The notes beneath the pieces are model-generated. The model had not been told where the DNA came from and searched no databases. It saw only the letters and a program-made list of their open reading frames with translations. A program made the position numbers and the translations under genes. From Oikopleura dioica (lineage: Eukaryota; Animalia; Chordata), in the NCBI GenBank assembly GCA_907165135.1, contig OU015566.1:13764001-13828000 (forward strand): a stretch of 64,000 nucleotides of DNA, read 5' to 3'. Numbering within the stretch: the stretch's first letter is position 1; the number at the start of each line of letters is the position of its first letter. This document shows positions 37,957-60,800 of this stretch, piece after piece.

Positions 37957-40900
37957 ATGGTTATTGAAGAAGAAAATGAAAAAATAAAGAAGGCGATTTT
38001 CCAGACTAGAGTCCGGGTAATTTTTATTTAATTCGCTTCATAAACTCTCTCGAAAAGTGTATTGATTGCGACTGCAAGGGCGTTCTGAGATTGAAGGGAA
38101 AGAAAGTTTATCTGCTACCCATCGAAGTCTTGACAACTCGTAGCATTCATACTCAAGAATATGATATCAAAAAGTCAAAGAAAAAAAAGACTTGGAAGAA
38201 AATAAACTCGAAAATGGCCTTGGCAGAGCACGGAAACGCCACCGATCCCCAGCAGTACAGTTATCTGACACTTGGCACTATTTTTTGGGTCACTGTCATG
38301 CTCATAGGTACCTTCTCTATAAATAATAGACTATAATTTTCTTCCAAAAATACTTTGAACCTAGCGAATTTGGCGTCTTTGGAGAAATCTCGCGGCGTAA
38401 CGACTTTTCTGACGTCAACTTGTCACCGAAACTACAAAAAATGCGTCCAAAACGTGACAATGGATCTCTGCGGGCATTTGATGAAGCAATGTCACGAGAC
38501 AGAAGAGTTTATTCTTCCTGAACCAGTTTCTAAAATTGAACACGCCAAAGCAGCGCCTCTTATCTTCACTGAAGAAGAGAACGAAGTAAATTTCCGCCGC
38601 TGTCAGAAGAAACAATTTTACGACCAGAATATCTGCCGCCATCTCTGCTCGACCACACTTGTTTTGAAATCAACGAGGACGAACCCAATCTCCCCCTGCG
38701 AGTCGATTTGCTTCGAACTAACCAAATCTTCTGATGCCGCTGGAGAAGTCTGTCCAACTCAGAAGTACTGCAAAAGCGGATGCCCTTGTCCATTCTACGA
38801 TTGTGAAAAATTTGACTCACGACAAAAAATGATTCCTGCGTTTGATTTAAAGTCGAATTCAATTAACTCAGTTTCGGGTGCAGTAAAAGATGCCATAAGA
38901 AAGTCAAACGGCAACGTCGAACAGATAACTGCTCGTTTGGACTACCGAGAATATGGAAAACGAAAGATCTTAAAATTTCGAAAAATTGTGCTCTCCGATT
39001 TTGACGGAAATGTGAAAGACATTGATGTTTATGATAGTTTTTTTCTTTATGAACGTTTTTCTTGATTTCTTATGAGTCTCCTTTTCTTTTAAAAACGGAG
39101 TCAACAAAAACGCACAAGTCAACTGGTGCAACGTATCTCAATGGAGAACACTACCTGGTTGATGCGGTTGGAAATCTAATGAAAGTGAGGGAAACTGGCA
39201 TAGCTCCGATATTCATTCCAAATCGTCTTAAACGAGTGTAAAAATTTGCATATTTTTTATTGCATATTTCCTTGTTTTTAGAGGATTTTTTGTTTTTCAT
39301 TTCGGCTCGTCGATCGCAAAACATCATATCGAGATTCGTTTTAGAGAGAAGGGTAAGAGGATCTTTCCTGTTGTGGTCATCTGAAAAAGGTCCAAATATG
39401 CTTAACCCGTTGCCGACCGGTTGGCGTAGAAACGCCTTCTACGCCAATAAGTTTCCCGTATTTCGAGCCTCGGGGCGTGTTGTATCAGCAAAACTGCTAC
39501 GCGCTCGGCAACGGGTGAACCCGATCTGAGATCGGCGATCTCTTTTCATCATGAATGTTTGAACCACATAAAAGTTCTCCAACTGGAAGAGAGGACAAAT
39601 GCTACTTCTACGCTCCAGATTATAATTTAAACCGTTTCGAAGAGGCCCAAGGTTACATCGCCAGTAACCACTTCAATGCAAAAGTCTCTTCAACAAGCTT
39701 CAAGGGAGTTTTCTATCTGATGAGCGTCCGAATGAGCGAAAATTTTATCAAATTATCAACCACTGTGGCTTTGAACAGAATAAGAAAAGATGAAGAACTT
39801 GAAAAAGGGTGGAGAAAGAATGAGATCCATCTACCTTCAGAATTCAGAGACTTGGATCCTGTTCATGTTTTTCCTATGACAAGAGTTCAAATTGATTTAT
39901 TTTCATGTTCAAAAGTGATTCTATTGTCGAACTTATGAAAGAATGATTTGGGAAGACTTCTTCTTATTTTAGTTACCAGAAGTATCAATCTTTCAAATAC
40001 TTTGTATTCGCTATTGTTGGAAGCGGACGGGAAGTTTCTGACTCTGGGAAGCGAGTGGATTGGCTCTCTTGTTGAGTATGAAGAAGAATCTATCTGCTAT
40101 TCGAAATTATTTGCTTCAATGGATCTCAATTATACTGATCGGGGTGCATTTAACAATGACGAATGCGAGTACTTTGTAAATGGAATACTCAACGACGAGA
40201 GGATTTTTCTTCAAAACAATGTTTTTGACTTGATTTTTGAAATAAGTTATAATTTCGGAAAGGGTTTTTTCTAAAGCAACTATTGTAATCATAGTTATTT
40301 GACTGTGAAATTCATAACGAGCTGAAAATTCTCACCAAAATGATTTAAATCCACAAAAGACACGATCGACGTCGAATTCGTTCAGCAAAAAGCTATCAAG
40401 AAAATGCACGTGACAAGCAATCCCTTTTTTGGCTTCCACGATGACATCTTCCCTGCTTTTGCGAAAAATGCTGAAAATCAGTCACCTTTTCCGGGGTCAT
40501 TTCACCACAAAACAATTATACCCGATTACTCATTTACTTCCCTCGAAGAGTTCAAACACATTTCAACTGTCGAAATGAAACTTGATGGAACTGATAAATT
40601 TGAGTTCGATATGAAGATAAATTCAAGTTTTGGTGAAAAGTTTGAAGTTCTTGAAAGCAATTTCTTTGATGGAACAACTTTCTTTCTTTTTGGAAGTTTT
40701 CAAAATGGGTCGTTTTGGATTGAGTCTGATTATTTTGATAAAAGCGTGATTTTCCAGTATAATGAATCAGAATCGATGCATTTGGCATTCAATATAAATT
40801 TTAATTTTTCTGATGATGGATCTGTTAATTCATCGTCTTTTGAAGTTTCTAAGGAAGCGTCTAGTTTATTTTCAATCTAAAAAAATTTGTTCCTGTCTAA

Positions 40901-53771: not shown

Positions 53772-56700
53772 TTATTTTTGCACACAATAATCGGCAGATA
53801 CTTGTAAAAGAACTGGATTCACATCGAAGCATTCTTCACAAAGAACAGGAAAATTATTGCCTATAACCTTTTGATTTATCAATTGATCTTCTTCGAAATC
53901 GAGGCGCACGATCTCGTTTGGACTTTCGATGCCTGAGACGATGAAAATTGAATTGTTGATCATTATTGTCGATCCACCAGAGTCAGCCTATATTGAAATC
54001 AATCTCATTTTTAAATTATTTTGTACTTACGTTTAGAAGATTTCCAATTTCATTCCAGATGTTATTTTGAAGAAGCCAAATTTTCTTCTTGCTTACAAAC
54101 TGGTAATCGATTCCTCCAGCAAGCAAGAGACTTCCACTCGGTAGTCCCATCAAATAATGATAAGCAGTTGCTCTTAAAAATTTTAGAAATAAGATTATTT
54201 GGTAAAATACTGTGGGAATTCGGTCAAAAATGTCCATCCAGAAGAGCTCAGAGTTTCTACGTTAACCGGATAATTCTCGTGCCTATAATCTCCTACAGTT
54301 GTTGGTTGTCCGTTGTACATTCCAAGTCCGCCACCTAAATGCCCTTCTGCGGTTGAATATGTCAAGCCAGATGTAACACTGTCATAAATTTCGCAATTTT
54401 TGGCTTCGCCGAAGCAAATTAATGCTTTATTCCCATTTTCAATTGATAAAGCCGAAGAAGGATCAAAAGCTCTGAAAATCAATCGTGACGTTTGTTCTTC
54501 CCATCGGCAGCCGTTTAGTTTAGCAATCTATATAGATATTATAGAAGTATAAATTTTCATTACTTTTTGAAAGTTATCTTCGTAATAAGCTCCTCCACCG
54601 AAAGCGTAAAGCTCCCCCTTAATAAGTGCGTGAGGAGCGGCATAGACGAAGAAATCAGAAGGTGCAGTTATCCTAGCCGCGCTTTTTGTCGATCCATCGA
54701 AGGAAATTGAGAAGGCTCCGCTCAAGCTATGGCCCATAACCAAAATATGCTAAATAGATTATTATGTATATATATATATATTATATTATTATAATATATA
54801 TTTATGAGATGCAATAAGCCCAAAATATGAAAATTAACCTCGCAAACATTTACCTTACAAATTTCATTCTTGCACCCATCACAACCGTTTGGGCAATTTG
54901 TTCCGCATGGACAAAATGAAGAACAATCTAGTGATATATCTTTTCAGGTTGACTTCGTTAATAGATCATATGATTTTGTATCGAACGTTTTCGTTTATTG
55001 GATAAACTTCATCAGGATACTAAACTTAAGATGAACGAAAAAGAAACAGAGGAAAAAGAATACTTTTATGTTGAGAGAGCAGTGTGAAATTGCTAACTGA
55101 GGAAAACAGAAAAACAAAATCAAAATATGGCTGTTTTTAGTCGAGCGCCAAGGTGGCCCAAACGACTTATCAAAATTGATAAAAGTAAAAACCTTGCTTT
55201 TGTTAATGCGTCTGATTATTATGATAAAATGAACAAAGAATTTCCACGATCAAAGTTCGTCAAAATTGAAAGTGACCCTACCTCAAAAGATATCGCAGAT
55301 TTTAATGAAAGCATTAAAATCCAAAAACCCCTATCTCTCTTGTTCTACTTTCAAATCTATTCAATGTAATCATAAAGTAAAATCGAGCTTCGGCTTATTA
55401 AAAGTCCATAAACCAGCTCCACATCCAGTACGTCCAATTATTGGTGCACCTGGTAGCATTACTGCGAATATTGAAAAATACATCTACTCCATTCTATCCA
55501 AAATTGTTCCTGAGCTTAAATTCTCTTGTTCTTCTACTAAAGAATTTAAAAGTGCATTTACTAAAATCTCACCTCAAATAACATCAGAACATTCTATTTG
55601 GAGTGCAGATGTCGTGTCAATGTATCCATCAATTGACAATTCTAAAGCTATTGACGTGATTATTGATATTCTTTATAAAAATCCTCTTCGATATTTTAGC
55701 CCTGAAGATCTTCCAGATGGCACTATTAGTTATTTTCCCCCTAAAGATGTTTTTCGATCTATTCTTGTTTCAGTCTTACAAAAGTTTACTTCTTTTTCCA
55801 CACAAGAAGGCTACTATAAACAGAAATTCGGGTGCTCAATGGGCTCCCGACTTGCCCCTCTTGTAGCTAATATTTACATCTCTAGCCTGGAAACTGAATT
55901 TCTTACAACTGAAATTAAAAAGGGTAATATACTTTTTTGTAGGCGTTACGTAGACGACTACTGTCTTGTTACCAAAACTAGTGCCAAAAAACGAATTTTC
56001 AACTGTCTAAATAAGTTTGATCCGTCCATTAAAATGACCTGTGAAGATATGAAAGACAACTGTCTTCCTTATCTTGATACATGCATTAAACTTCATGACA
56101 ATCAATATCACTTATTCTTTTACGAGAAAGCTAACAAAAGTGATATCCTTCAAAATTTTCGTACTGGAATCGCTCCCCTTAATCAGAAAATATCAACGCT
56201 TACTGGCGAAATCTATCGCAGAAATAATACAACATCATGTCCGTATGCATTGAATATTGCTCTTGAACAATTGACTGATCGCTTTCTTAAGAATTCATAC
56301 CCGTTTCACCTCATTAAACGTAAAATCAAAGAAATTAAAAACAATAATTTCGAGCCACTGAAACGAGATGATTCTAAAATTGTGAAAAAATTCAACTTGT
56401 GCCTAGATTTTACTAGTGAAAGATGCTACTCAATTGGACTTAGTCTTCAAAAACTCTTCCGAAAAGTAACACCTTCCTTTTGCCTAGTCGTTAGTTGGAA
56501 AACCATACGACTCGAAAGAGCCTTAGGCAAATTTCTCAAAAGAGTCCCTGAAAAATACGATTTGTGTGATCTCGTTTATTCCTGGAAATGTGACTGTAAA
56601 GCGCAATACATTGGTCAGTCCAAACGAAGAGCTGGTATTCGTTGGACTGAACATGTTAATTCTAACAACCAGAATAAAAATGCTTCTTCTTCCATCTTCA

Positions 56701-57672
56701 AACATATTTCCACTTGTCAAACTTTTCAAAAAAGCTATGAAACTTACATAAGTGAGCCAAGCACAAAAAATCTCACCAGTCAATACAAGACTAAAATCGC
56801 CCAATCGAAACTTGCTCTTGAGTCCTTTCACTCAAAAAATCCTCCGAAAATTCGATACAAATTTTCAAAAAATGACTATGCTTTAAAATACTTTGATGTT
56901 CTGCAAACTAATCTAACAAACGAGAGTCAAAGGAGAAGCGTTGAACAATTTCTTATTTTACTGCATCGACCCTCCCTAAATGAACAATCTGATTTCAAAC
57001 AGTTCAAAACTTTTTAATTTTAGTCGAGCACTGTTTTGGGCCACCTTGGCGCTCGACTAAAAACAGCCATATTTTGATTTTGTTTTTTTGTTTTCCTCAG
57101 TTAGCAATTTCACACTGCTCTCTCAACATAAAAGTATTCTTTTTCCTCTGTTTCTTTTTCGTTCATCTTAAGTTTAGTATCCTGATGAAGTTTATCCAAT
57201 AAACGAAAACGTTCGATACAAAATCATATGATCTAATCTAGTGATAGTTAAAGAAAATAACATCCTTTTAAAATACCGTAGAATTCGCCAAGACATGAGT
57301 TTTCGCACAAAGCGTTGTCGCATTGGCTTCTGCATTGGAGATAATCCAGTCTGCAAAGAGCCGTACATTCTTCATAAAGATCAATATCGCTTAAACGATA
57401 ACTTAGAAGAGATACCAATTTACATAGAAAACAAAAAGAGAAAATTAAGATTGATTAAACCTACGAAGTTATTTCTTTACTTACGGGCATTCTTCTTCCT
57501 TGATTTCAGGAGCATGATTCTCTGGATGAAATTCCTCATCCGATGCATTGAAAACTGGTCTCTCGAGAAAAGTCTCGTTTTCGTCGGGATCTTCCCATGA
57601 AGGCCGAGCTCTGAAGTTTGAGTCCGCGCAGAGAAATCCTTCCAAAAATATGCAACTGCTCAAGAATCTCAT
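53772..57672 (-). CDS. Secreted Cys-rich / Kelch-like beta-propeller protein (paralog C), interrupted by the Penelope element
   Basis: Exons: MRFLSSCIFLEGFLCA...EEECP; ...EECTALCRLDYLQCRSQCDNALCENSCLGEFY (ends 57277); DCSSFCPCGTNCPNGCDGCKNEICK (54927-54854); HALIKGELYAFGG; GGGLGMYNGQPTTVG; ...NPVLLQVSADYCVQK*. Confidence 0.75.
54978..55020 (-). ncRNA. Second hammerhead copy, in the inverted pLTR and sense to the host gene
   Basis: Exact reverse complement of 57177-57219; predicted cleavage between 54983 and 54982. Confidence 0.88.
55266..57017 (+). CDS. PLE reverse transcriptase / GIY-YIG endonuclease; 5'-truncated, probable frameshift near 55300-55335
   Basis: KVHK...PVRPII, SADVVSMYPSI, GCSMGSRLAP, RRYVDD, LPYLD; LVYSWKCDCKAQYIGQSKR..IRWTEH; RSVEQFLI..HRPSLN. 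The upstream IKIDKSKNLAFVNASDY (typical PLE DK motif) is in another frame. Confidence 0.92.
   Translation: MKVTLPQKISQILMKALKSKNPYLSCSTFKSIQCNHKVKSSFGLLKVHKPAPHPVRPIIGAPGSITANIEKYIYSILSKIVPELKFSCSSTKEFKSAFTKISPQITSEHSIWSADVVSMYPSIDNSKAIDVIIDILYKNPLRYFSPEDLPDGTISYFPPKDVFRSILVSVLQKFTSFSTQEGYYKQKFGCSMGSRLAPLVANIYISSLETEFLTTEIKKGNILFCRRYVDDYCLVTKTSAKKRIFNCLNKFDPSIKMTCEDMKDNCLPYLDTCIKLHDNQYHLFFYEKANKSDILQNFRTGIAPLNQKISTLTGEIYRRNNTTSCPYALNIALEQLTDRFLKNSYPFHLIKRKIKEIKNNNFEPLKRDDSKIVKKFNLCLDFTSERCYSIGLSLQKLFRKVTPSFCLVVSWKTIRLERALGKFLKRVPEKYDLCDLVYSWKCDCKAQYIGQSKRRAGIRWTEHVNSNNQNKNASSSIFKHISTCQTFQKSYETYISEPSTKNLTSQYKTKIAQSKLALESFHSKNPPKIRYKFSKNDYALKYFDVLQTNLTNESQRRSVEQFLILLHRPSLNEQSDFKQFKTF
57177..57219 (+). 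ncRNA. Minimal type I hammerhead ribozyme in the PLE 3' repeat
   Basis: GUAUC-CUGAUGA-A-GUUUA uccaa UAAAC-GAAA-ACGU-UC-GAUAC: stem I GUAUC/GAUAC, conserved core, stem II 5 bp, palindromic AACGUU stem III; predicted cleavage after C57214. Confidence 0.88.
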
Positions 57673-57862
57673 TTCAAATTGAAAATATAGTGCTGTAATG
57701 ATGCTTCAGGGTAAGAAAAGAAATTGCTTGATAAATGTTAAACGCGCATTAGATGTAGCTCTGATATTTAATTGATCGTAAAAAGAACTCATTAAACTCG
57801 ATCAGTCGTTTACTGAATTTGAAGTAATGCGTGTTTATTCGACTTTACAGAAAATGAACAAT

Positions 57863-60800
57863 CTATGCGCTACAATAATTGATTGTTGTGAAAAATACAA
57901 TCGGTCGAGGGTAAGCCCGTTCGTGGGATCCAATAATATCAACAGATCTGATTTTATCGTCCTCTTTAATATCAGTTAACAAACTAATATGATATAAGTT
58001 ATATCAACCAATGTTCTTAGAAGTAAGTTTTTCAATATTATTAACATAAGTGATATAATATCACTGATATTACATAACTGTTCCTATCTGCAAGCGTTGA
58101 ATGATCCGGACACCGTAGGTGTTCCCTGGAAAAAGATATATAGTGTTGTCCGCGACGATCCCTGATCCACAATTTATTGCCTAGAAATGAAGAATTTTAT
58201 CGTTTTTAGTAAGACTCTGACCTGTAGTAAATCTCTCATTTTAGCCCATTCAGACTCGTTTAGAAACCAAACTTCCTTTAGCTGTTCTCGCTTACATTGA
58301 TCAAAGCCTCCTAACGTAGCTATTGAGCCAGATGGTAATTCCACAGCGGAATGTCGTTCAATACATCTCAAAGATCATTTCCGCGAAGGGAGCCCTCACT
58401 CAATAAAATTACCTTGGATGAGCGGTTAGTTTTTCCCAGACATTTTCAGCCAGTGTTTCAGTATATCCTTTGTTCGTGCGAGGATAGTTTTGACCACCGA
58501 TTGTTGTGGGTTGGCCATGATTAAGACCAAGTGCGCCATTCCAATGACCTTGTTTTGCTTCAAACGGTAGCTTTTCAACAGCAGTACCGTTGAATGTGTC
58601 GCAGTTCTTGTTGCTTTCTGAGTCGAAACAGACAAGAGCTAAAAGCTCTTTAACCCGTTGCCGAGCGCGTCGCAGTTTCGCTGGTACGACACGCCCCGAG
58701 GCTCGAAATACGGCGTTCTTATTGGCGTAGAACAGAGTTGCAAATTTGCTGAGCTGAGTGAGCTGAGCTGGCTGAGTGAGCTGAGCAGTCGCTCAGCTCA
58801 GCTCACTGATTTTCGAAAATGAATTTATCTGCTCAGCTCAGCTCAGCTCAGACAATAATCACTCAGCTCCGAAATAGGCTAGCTCAGCTCAGCTCAGCTC
58901 AGAGAATTTCTCACTCAGGGCAGCTCAGCTCAGCTCAGCAAAAATAAAGCCAAATTTGCAACTCTGGCGTAGAAGGCAAATTTATGCCTACTGCTCGGAA
59001 ACGGGTTAAAATAATTAATATTTTTACGGTACCTTTTGCTCCTTTTTCAATCGAGAGAGCTGCACTTCCGATAGAAAATTTTCTTTGAAGTCGCACTCGA
59101 AGTTCAATGAATGTGCATTTTTCAACCTTGAGAATCTACAAAATGGTAAAATAACAAAATATCCGGCAAACTACCATTTGTCCATCCTTCTTGCCACCAA
59201 ATAAATACAATTGCCCATTCACAAGCGCATGTTTAGACTCCTCGATGTTATAAAGTAGATTTTCCGGAATAATAATTTTCGCATTTTTATTTGTTGAACC
59301 ATCCCCAAAGAGTGCATATTGCTCAGATGGCTCATTCAGTTCAGTTAGAATAGCGTGAATTTGGCTTGGTTGATTTTGATAAAAGAAGATATTTTTTATT
59401 TGAGTTTGGTCGTCGAATTTGAAGACTCTTATTCTCTTGTCTTTCATCGTTTGAAGGTCGTTCTTCATCTTTCTTTCTGCGATTTTCTCTTCGTTTTTCT
59501 TGAGAACAAAGAAGAGGGAGGTGGTTTCATTCTTTTCGAAAACTATTTCAATCGACCTCCAGTCTTTGCTCAAGAAATCGTCAAGGACAATGGTTTCTTC
59601 GAAAAAATCAGATGTTATCCCCGTCGACCTGTTTTTAAAAACTTCAATATGAAAGATGGATTTTTCGTTGTATGATCGGAACTCGAGGAGCTTCGTTGGT
59701 CCTTTTATACTCGATTGTTTCTTTTAAGTTTCATAAGAAGATAATTTTTATGTTGTCTATTTGTATATTTTAACTTATGAATCTTTCCTTAATTTCTAAT
59801 TTCAATTTTCGCGTTTGGTTGAAGCCAATCTCAAATGAAGAAATATGGAATAATTCTTCCTGGAAAGATGTGAAGGGATGGTTAGGGAGAATCGCCAAAG
59901 GATACGGCGGAGAGAGACTACTTGCTGATTGTGGAAACGGAGCAATTTTGCCGACAGCATTTTTAGCGAAATTGGGAAAAACATCGTCATGAAAAGCGAA
60001 AAACGGGTTGCTCGCAACATGCATTTTTTGCTCAGCTTTCTGTTGAAGAAAATCGAGCTCGATTTGATCTTTTTAGGATACTCAGATGGTAAACATTCTA
60101 ATATTCGAAGAACTGTATATGATATACAGTATATCCATTCCGAAATTGAAAAAGATCTCAAATGTTGAATCGAAAACCAAATTTTGGAGGTAAATCCGAT
60201 CATTGTTCAAAAAGGCGTTGATGAAATATTCACACTCATCGTTGTTGGTTCCGAATTGATTCGAATACGCGAGATCGTAAGGAGCGTAGAGGCCAGAGTG
60301 ACATTTTGAGTCCTGATCGTATTTTACCAAGGAGCCAATCCATTCGCTTCCTAGCGGCAAGAATTTTCCTTCTTTTTCGAGCATCAAGGAGTACTGCATG
60401 TTTGAAAGAACAATGCTTCTAGTAACGATTATAAGCATCAATTGACCAACATCAATCTTTTTATGGAATCGCGGAAAGATTAAAAAATATTTTTGAAAAC
60501 AAATTTGGCGATCCCGTTCCAGAGGTATTACATGAACGGGGTCAAAGTCTCTCAGCATTGCTGGAACCGCGATTTCGTCCTTGCGCCAGCCTTTTTCAAG
60601 CTCTTCATTTTGTCGAATCGCGTTGAGTGCGACTGTCTTTGAAACAGTGATCCAAGCTTTGCCGAGTTCTATGCTCATCAGGAAAAAGGTGCCACCAAAG
60701 CTGATGGAGGACATTCTAGCGTTGAAATGGTTGCTAGCGATGTAACCTTGAGCCGTTTCAAATCTGTTTAAATTATAATCCGGCGCATAATAGTAGCATT

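Follow-up and report, generated by a model that had tools for sequence, protein, structure and literature searches.

A compact Penelope-like element (PLE) carries a minimal type-I hammerhead motif in each of its two inverted arms, and one of these motifs lies in an intron of a host gene in the window (the whole 64-kb stretch of DNA analysed here). We consider it highly probable that the element inserted recently and that the intronic hammerhead is a passenger, with no host-relevant cleavage as the most likely outcome. It represents a known type of motif, carried along as an ordinary passenger; known biology is confirmed, and a role in host-gene regulation is unsupported.

Minimal hammerheads in both arms

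The motif is 43 nt long (GUAUC-CUGAUGA-A-GUUUAU-CCA-AUAAAC-GAA-AACGUU-C-GAUAC) and is repeated as an exact reverse complement on the minus strand (Table 1). It combines a 5-bp stem I, a 6-bp stem II with a 3-nt loop and the core CUGAUGA plus GAA-A, with UUC as the cleavage triplet; stems I and II close the three-way junction. Stem III consists of a 6-nt palindrome, AACGUU, for which self-closure is impossible (2-nt loop). Cleavage is predicted between 57214 and 57215 in the plus-strand copy and between 54983 and 54982 in the minus-strand copy, and the 3′ products would begin at 57215 and 54982, the two ends proposed by an earlier reading of the sequence alone (the sequence-only reading).

A descriptor scan of both strands of the 64 kb returned these two sites only, and none of 100 block shuffles gave a match. 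A covariance model built from a trimmed alignment of six other PLE families of the same genome, with this family left out, scored both sites at 31 bits (E ~8.5e-5, a rough calibration), and its next-best match in the window reached 17 bits (E 0.14). For the stems, pairs were counted outward from the junction by script rather than taken from a MAFFT alignment of whole hammerheads, which was rejected because it put the 3′ strand of stem I in the wrong place. Sequence, descriptor and covariance model agree on the two cores with palindromic stem III that the sequence-only reading had placed here, and confirm them as real, standard PLE minimal hammerheads. Both scans also bear out its deduction from the inverted repeats that each strand of the 64-kb window holds one copy. 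Rfam gave no hammerhead match in the whole window at the gathering threshold or in 54700–57500 at E ≤ 10, and RF00163 (Hammerhead_1, gathering threshold 34 bits) had no match in the whole genome. We take these misses as a limit of the models and not as evidence against the motif; the models expect helix III and no bulge.

Four signatures have been described for PLE minimal hammerheads (PMC4209133): covarying stems, an unpaired base between A9 and G10.1, a G10.1–C11.1 pair and a palindromic stem III. The window hammerhead has all four and lies in the terminal repeats of a PLE, in line with its earlier classification as PLE-type. Seven PLE families in the genome share the architecture with different, compensating stems I and II (2–4 standard pair types per position across families) and an invariant G10.1–C11.1 (7/7). 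Stem III is self-complementary in all seven (AACGUU, ACGCGU, AGCU, AGAUCU and ACCGGU), a regularity that is partly ascertainment, as the second scan demanded a palindrome. An unpaired A or U follows CUGANGA in every family, A in the window family; the ‘extra A’ between the core and stem II that had been singled out is therefore present, but as one of the published signatures and not as an oddity. The genome as a whole has at least 80 more hammerheads, usually arranged in −,+,+ triplets or −,+ pairs around PLE open reading frames (ORFs), and at least 45 arm copies belong to the window family. For some PLE families, no hammerhead was found within the ±1.5 kb flanks examined. The genome also holds many arm pairs spaced just 100–900 nt.

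Table 1 Features of the element and its insertion site, in window coordinates
Feature	Position	Strand	Evidence
Host exon N+1, cysteine-rich; followed by donor GT 54853-54852	54854..54927	-	Paralogue comparison
Target-site duplication, left copy, 12 nt (AATCTAGTGATA); minus-strand acceptor AG 54929-54928 beside exon	54925..54936		Repeat search, sequence
Tail	54937..54961		Alignments to other copies start 54932-54935; PLE tail in PMC8557442, PMC11167929
Left inverted arm, inverted copy of the element's 3′-terminal 201 nt; contains the ORF ATG (55127)	54962..55162	-	Repeat search
Minimal type-I hammerhead, host pre-mRNA sense copy	54978..55020	-	Descriptor match; leave-one-out covariance model, 31 bits
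Element ORF: putative reverse transcriptase and candidate C-terminal GIY-YIG-like/CCHH motif	55127..57017	+	Profile searches, alignment
12-bp hairpin directly past the stop codon; inner boundary of the arm (57035) in its loop	57018..57062	+	Repeat search
Right arm (3′ pseudo-LTR)	57035..57235	+	Repeat search; other copies
Minimal type-I hammerhead, ORF-sense copy, 160 nt past the element's stop codon	57177..57219	+	Sequence, descriptor, covariance model
Target-site duplication, right copy; original acceptor AG 57239-57238, with element sequence now downstream of it	57235..57246		Repeat search, sequence
Host exon N, cysteine-rich; donor GT 57276-57275; putative 5′ limit	57277..57418	-	>100 paralogous matches

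The element and its host intron

The element is a 2.3-kb PLE with a 12-nt target-site duplication. Its parts are a tail, an inverted arm of 201 nt, an ORF for a putative reverse transcriptase (RT) with a candidate GIY-YIG motif, and a second arm of 201 nt. Its arms are identical at 200 of 201 positions, the sole difference lying outside the hammerhead. PLEs are known to have pseudo-LTRs with an inverted 5′-side copy made at integration, a tail, tens of bases long, on one side only, and 5′-truncated copies (PMC8557442), and the window element shows the pseudo-LTRs with the inverted 5′ copy, the one-sided tail and truncated relatives. The 5′-truncated copies elsewhere all bear the same 201-nt inverted arm abutting the truncated body, which argues that the arm was made at integration.

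Relative to three other copies, the ORF has gained an extra base near 55326–55335 that disrupts its frame, and it reads in two frames (55127–55369 and 55266–57017). It scores 28.1 bits against RVT_1 (cut-off 29.6; E 2e-6) and E 6.7e-6 against a group II RT model, and a PDB sequence search gave marginal RT matches only; a relative from the same genome, with 37% identity, clears the RVT_1 cut-off at 42.4 bits. Pfam gave no GIY-YIG match. A four-family alignment, assessed by eye, contains the invariant pattern Y..C.C...Y.G...R....R...H ... H...C ... R...E ... P.LN.Q. About 250 N-terminal residues present in the other PLE families of the genome are absent from this ORF.

Host exon N gave more than 100 paralogous matches, nearly all with their end at query residue 46 of 47, and exons N and N+1 are 33–122 nt apart in 15 paralogues as opposed to 2349 nt here. 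This spacing supports the host gene model, which places the minus-strand hammerhead in sense orientation within a host intron. On that strand the hammerhead ends at 54978, upstream of the acceptor AG and the first exon base (54927), and the predicted cut is 55 nt upstream of that base; the sequence-only reading, which had also called the motif sense and intronic, gave about 54 nt to the acceptor, in agreement with this distance. The original acceptor, if used, would give GAT TAG, an immediate stop. Pfam searches with the host exons, one by one, returned nothing significant.

The single DNA run that covers the flanks carries the insertion; the other DNA run is too divergent, with hardly any coverage of the unique flanks in X6. 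A joint in contig X1 (54955→57210) has just 20 nt on its shorter side, and it was rejected as an empty site because there 54936 would be joined to 57247. Coverage by two bulk oligo-dT RNA runs was 1–2 reads over 4.8 kb, host exons included; these runs probably come from a divergent population that shares the species label.

Probable inactivity of the intronic hammerhead

We propose that the compact PLE landed recently on the 3′ end of an approximately 39-nt intron of a minus-strand host gene. Each arm bears the minimal type-I hammerhead of the family, unable to form helix III alone, and the minus-strand copy would owe its existence solely to PLE integration, in which the 3′ end is copied in inverted orientation onto the 5′ side. 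The hammerhead would belong to the RNA biology of the element itself and, by analogy with studied PLE hammerheads, would cleave no more than slowly, either as a domain-swapped dimer or assisted by the protein of the element. In the host pre-mRNA it would be monomeric, have no partner on the same strand and could be sequestered by pairing with the other arm over 201 bp; for these reasons, a host-relevant rate of cleavage is most likely absent and the motif is presumably inactive in the host transcript. Given the protein-assisted cleavage reported for another PLE, some activity is conceivable when the protein of the element is expressed.

Published behaviour and predicted energies bear on this reading. 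Single PLE minimal hammerheads showed no detectable cleavage and dimers cleaved at low levels even in cis, dimer-dependent activity being the accepted model for the class (PMC4209133). The PLE hammerhead of Anolis is protein-assisted; insertion in vitro is possible without it, and no RNA-seq ends occur at the cut site. The window monomer folds at −5.7 kcal/mol (z = −1.4) and its hammerhead-compatible fold at −4.2 kcal/mol, and it lacks the stable monomeric fold with helix III that marks functional intronic hammerheads. Nearest-neighbour energies, which leave out tertiary contacts, Mg2+, proteins and co-transcriptional folding, put the double hammerhead at −11.7 kcal/mol and a pair of monomer ensembles at −12.5 (approximately +0.8 kcal/mol relative to the monomers, an implied Kd in the molar range); the best alternative dimer has a Kd of ~0.2 mM. 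The intron contains a 201-nt complement of the arm, and the arm–arm duplex within the same pre-mRNA is predicted at about −345 kcal/mol. The minus-strand hammerhead is transcribed ~1.9 kb after its complement, and a transient local fold could form.

The sequence-only reading had proposed that the intronic hammerhead, possibly weak as a monomer, could be activated in trans by PLE RNA or by another pre-mRNA, coupling host output to element expression. In the version weighed here, the monomer is silent, activation by sense RNA of this PLE family or by a second pre-mRNA runs through the palindromic stem III, and the cut falls 55 nt before the acceptor. The motif is indeed intact and on the sense strand of the intron, a partner whose stems I and III match could come from the other arm copies of this family, and both the dimer model and the one PLE reported as protein-assisted are compatible with such activation. 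We nevertheless regard it as very unlikely: dimerization brings no net gain in energy, and published cleavage is absent or low. Furthermore, over 2.3 kb the intron is a full complement of sense PLE RNA, so that sense–antisense pairing would dominate, and the intramolecular duplex of the arms competes with a hammerhead formed in trans. The near-identity of the arms marks the insertion as recent and the host gene is one among more than 100 paralogues, giving no sign that selection has favoured a function. We give equally little credence to cleavage in vivo whenever the PLE is expressed, aided by the RT/EN protein or by sense PLE RNA, which would switch off one member of the host family or release a 3′ fragment bearing the acceptor. 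If true, a single insertion would have built a ribozyme-based sensor of transposon expression.

An effect of the arms as a long inverted repeat, with the hammerhead uninvolved, is somewhat less improbable but still doubtful. Looping out of the element would bring the donor and both acceptors within ~75 nt, or the double-stranded RNA might feed silencing or editing. Both arms lie inside the 2349-nt intron and are complementary at 200 of 201 positions, and the distance from their outer ends is 3 nt to the upstream AG and 32 nt to the downstream one; however, the argument is purely structural, and helicases and co-transcriptional splicing may block pairing across 1.9 kb. Least credible is that the hammerhead consensus is matched by chance, with no relation to ribozymes. 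The silence of the Rfam hammerhead models even at E up to 10 and the weak monomer fold would suit it, but such a fold is expected for the minimal class, the shuffles and the independent covariance model speak against it, and the same architecture recurs in seven PLE families, always in terminal repeats. This cross-family covariation effectively refutes a chance origin.

Relation to known hammerheads

The closest relatives of the window motif are the PLE minimal hammerheads of Cervera and de la Pena 2014 (PMC4209133), also treated by Lunse, Weinberg and Breaker 2017, as far as the citation in PMC6765202 indicates. Shared features include the type-I topology, a short stem I, G10.1–C11.1 closing stem II, the unpaired nucleotide between A9 and G10.1, a palindromic mini stem III implying dimeric action, the pseudo-LTR location and frequent opposite-strand pairs a few hundred bases apart. 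Nothing essential differs; the window element is compact (~2.3 kb) and, because its arms are strictly inverted, a transcript of either strand carries a single hammerhead.

The intronic hammerheads described previously fold as stable monomers, with a complete helix III and loop–loop contacts, and are ultraconserved across species and efficient in vitro. In contrast, the window motif has no helix III and sits in a young transposon copy. What it shares with them, to the extent that they are covered by citation in PMC6765202, is a sense-strand intron position and, with it, a potential site of pre-mRNA self-cleavage. The double hammerheads of newt satellite 2 and avocado sunblotch viroid (Forster et al. 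1988, as represented in PMC4209133 and PMC6765202) likewise have an unstable helix III rescued by a domain-swapped dimer, but according to these accounts their dimers form in cis on tandem-repeat multimers, whereas the window has no second same-strand copy in 64 kb. Animal retrozymes (non-LTR, derived from PLE pseudo-LTRs; PMC7229834, bioRxiv 10.64898/2026.07.22.740005) resemble the short non-autonomous derivatives with PLE-type hammerheads in this genome; the retrozymes are direct tandem repeats that give circular RNAs, whereas the short derivatives here are inverted pairs.

The locus provides a clean, well-delimited example of PLE hammerheads from a marine animal whose genome is very compact and houses seven such families with covarying stems, and it illustrates how an element with strictly inverted arms leaves a host pre-mRNA with a single hammerhead. 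If the lone motif were cleaved in vivo, nature would have set up a test of whether minimal hammerheads can be activated in trans or with the help of a protein.

Minimal hammerheads in the inverted arms

Each inverted arm of the Penelope-like element (PLE) holds one hammerhead, and the two arms differ at 1 of 201 positions, outside the hammerhead. The sequence-only reading had described a complete core with a palindromic stem III, AACGUU, on both strands, and we recovered exactly this: the core consists of CUGAUGA and GAA-A, a 5-bp stem I is accompanied by a 6-bp stem II with G10.1–C11.1 as closing pair, a single unpaired A directly follows A9, and stem III is only the palindrome, which is unable to close as a hairpin. 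Cleavage is predicted at the triplet UUC, with 3′ products that start at 57215 (+) and 54982 (−), the same ends as predicted earlier.

Features of the element and its host exons, with hammerheads of other PLE families in the same genome
Feature	Position or locus	Strand	Detail
Hammerhead	57177–57219	+	GUAUC CUGAUGA A GUUUAU-CCA-AUAAAC GAA AACGUU C GAUAC, read from sequence 54800–57400
Hammerhead, second copy	54978–55020	−	Exact reverse complement of the 57177–57219 string
Inverted arms	54962–55162 / 57035–57235		One hammerhead each
ORF between arms	55266–57017		Plus upstream piece from ATG 55127 in another frame
12-nt target-site duplication	54925–54936 and 57235–57246		AATCTAGTGATA; brackets the insertion
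25-nt stretch	54937–54961		Between left duplication and left arm; common to other copies
First host exon	ends at 57277	−	...GAATTCTACG/GT
Second host exon	54927–54854	−	Starts AG/ATTGTTC..., ends AAG/GT
Family B hammerhead	L036		GUUUUUC CUGAUGA U GUUU..AAAC GAA AACGUU C GAAAAAC
Family C hammerhead	L046		UAGGG CUGAUGA A GGCAC..GUGCC GAA ACGCGU C CCCUG
Family D hammerhead	L051		UAGUA CUGAAGA U GGAU..AUCC GAA AGCU U UACUG
Family E hammerhead	L053		GUUU CUGAAGA U GGAAU..AUUCC GAA AGCU C AAAC
Family F hammerhead	L044		UGA CUGAUGA U GGAG..CUCC GAA AGAUCU A UCA
Family G hammerhead	L045		AGC CUGAUGA A GGAU..AUCC GAA ACCGGU A GCU

Besides the core, our own descriptor demands stem I, stem II, a short stem III and H as the cleavage-site base; over both strands of the 64-kb window these two sites were its sole matches, and it matched nothing in 100 block shuffles. 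The Rfam hammerhead models gave no match at gathering thresholds, nor one in the region when E values up to 10 were allowed, and RF00163 had no match genome-wide. As a helix III is expected by these models and a bulge is not, we trained a covariance model of our own on hammerheads from six other retroelement families of this genome, leaving out the window family, and ran it with filters off. Both sites scored 31 bits (E about 8.5e-5 on a rough calibration). The second-best match in the window, at 40075–40115 (+), reached 17 bits (E 0.14) and is probably due to chance. The hammerhead observation holds and goes far beyond what chance would produce.

Hammerheads of like architecture adjoin the ORFs of the other PLE families. 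Counted from the junction, most positions of stems I and II carry two to four standard pair types across families, G10.1–C11.1 is invariant, and every family has a self-complementary stem III and an extra base, A or U. Cervera and de la Pena (PMC4209133) put forward the same four features as arguments against a random origin of PLE minimal hammerheads; thus the ‘extra A’, rightly noticed in the sequence-only reading, is characteristic of the class, neither a defect nor an oddity. The window motif belongs to this known class, of which the inverted duplication and the ‘extra’ base are standard traits.

Genome-wide, the covariance model located at least 80 further hammerhead sites, a lower bound, as scoring covered 150 of about 12,800 candidates. 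They are typically arranged as −,+,+ triplets or close −,+ pairs; opposite-strand pairs 100–700 bp apart are already known in Schistosoma. In the triplets of other PLE families (for example, C4:4737835–4740934, C5:4880854–4883998 and C4:8246362–8249510), an inverted arm lies ~300 nt from a direct pseudo-LTR, with a second direct copy ~2.75 kb further on. Many pairs are just 200–900 nt apart and resemble short non-autonomous hairpin derivatives.

The element and its copies

In the ORF, RVT_1 scores just below the cut-off (E 2e-6), a weak but specific reverse-transcriptase match, and a group II RT model also matches (E 6.7e-6). Alignment with three ORFs of the same genome, 33–37% identical, brings out a C-terminal pattern, invariant in all four, which can be read as a putative GIY-YIG endonuclease with a CCHH motif; Pfam made no GIY-YIG call on this C terminus. 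Relative to three other copies, the window copy has one extra base near 55326–55335, which splits its ORF over two reading frames. The 25-nt stretch matches the one-sided ‘tail’ of PLEs (PMC8557442, PMC11167929).

Across the genome (64.28 Mb, 19 contigs) there are at least 45 arm copies, mostly as inverted pairs, and about 80 ORF matches with identities from 100% down to 24%. Bodies truncated at the 5′ end (starting at ORF residue 399, 492 or 521) retain the full 201-nt inverted arm, which thus arises at integration rather than being carried over from the template 5′ end. It corresponds to the ‘inverted 5′-truncated copy adjacent to the 5′ end’ of the PLE literature (PMC8557442). The ATG lies within the arm, so that the start codon is supplied by the arm added at integration.

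The family is unusually compact (about 2.3 kb), and its ORF starts at approximately aligned residue 250 of the other PLE families (822–833 aa; 55127–55369 compared with L044:637–3114, L051:640–3105 and L045:1342–3840). Directly 3′ of the stop codon is a 12-bp hairpin (57018–57062), the 21-nt loop of which contains the inner boundary of the arm (57035), a placement suggestive of a defined point of template switching or stopping that sets the arm length.

The host intron and the prospect of cleavage

The flanks encode two cysteine-rich exon pieces on the minus strand. Searched singly, each finds over 100 paralogous matches genome-wide, and a neighbouring exon has at least 150; nearly all first-exon matches end at residue 46/47, the position at which the donor was placed. 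The gap between the exons is 33–122 nt in 15 paralogues (mostly 36–48) versus 2349 nt in the window, which equals a 39-nt intron, the 2298-nt element and the 12-nt duplication. Paralogue spacing and this sum give good support, by inference, to the host gene model, in which the minus-strand hammerhead lies in the sense strand of the intron, as the sequence-only reading had proposed. The predicted cut is 55 nt upstream of the exon and the end of the motif is 48 nt upstream of the AG. Because the acceptor AG lies within the duplication, the acceptor is present twice; the upstream one (57239–57238), if used, reads GAT TAG, a stop. The tail now forms the 25 nt directly upstream of the duplicated 9 nt of the downstream acceptor (TATCACTAG), and is purine-rich, whereas the original intron end is pyrimidine-rich.

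Two RNA runs with the same species label contributed just 1–2 reads over 4.8 kb. Contigs from one DNA run span both junctions (53900–54964 and 57230–57920) at flank depth, and none of them contains an empty-site joint. DNA run X1 has a contig in which 54955 is followed directly by 57210 (depth 31.5; shorter side only 20 nt); we rejected it as an empty site, and its source may be a different copy whose tail abuts the final 26 nt of the arm.

The earlier proposal that trans-activation of the intronic hammerhead couples host output to element expression found no support. A single Schistosoma minimal hammerhead shows no detectable self-cleavage, and its dimers and trimers have low activity, mostly at non-physiological Mg2+ (PMC4209133). 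The Anolis PLE hammerhead requires the protein of the element, is dispensable for insertion in vitro and has no RNA-seq ends at its site (PMC11167929); the role of hammerheads in endonuclease-positive PLEs is still called unclear (PMC8557442). By nearest-neighbour estimates, which ignore tertiary contacts, proteins and folding kinetics, the hammerhead-compatible monomer is at −4.2 kcal/mol; a domain-swapped double hammerhead, at −11.7 kcal/mol against −12.5 kcal/mol for two monomer ensembles, offers no net gain. The best alternative dimer has a Kd near 0.2 mM, and pairing of the two arms within one pre-mRNA is estimated at about −345 kcal/mol. The proposed activator, sense PLE RNA, is complementary to the intronic antisense element over the full 2.3 kb. 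Weak published cleavage, the missing dimer gain and both kinds of complementarity argue against such coupling; on these estimates trans-activation would be improbable but not impossible, with a small residual chance of protein-assisted or trans cleavage in vivo.

The host gene family

The family of the host gene (53900–54750 and 57250–58650, minus strand) is very large and lineage-specific, with more than 100 paralogous cysteine-rich exons; the GQPTT-containing exon has at least 150 paralogues. Pfam had no match on the host exons. The module is repeated internally within the host gene, and the next intron (54753–54805) contains an AT-only palindromic low-complexity stretch at which reads appear cut in the sequencing runs.
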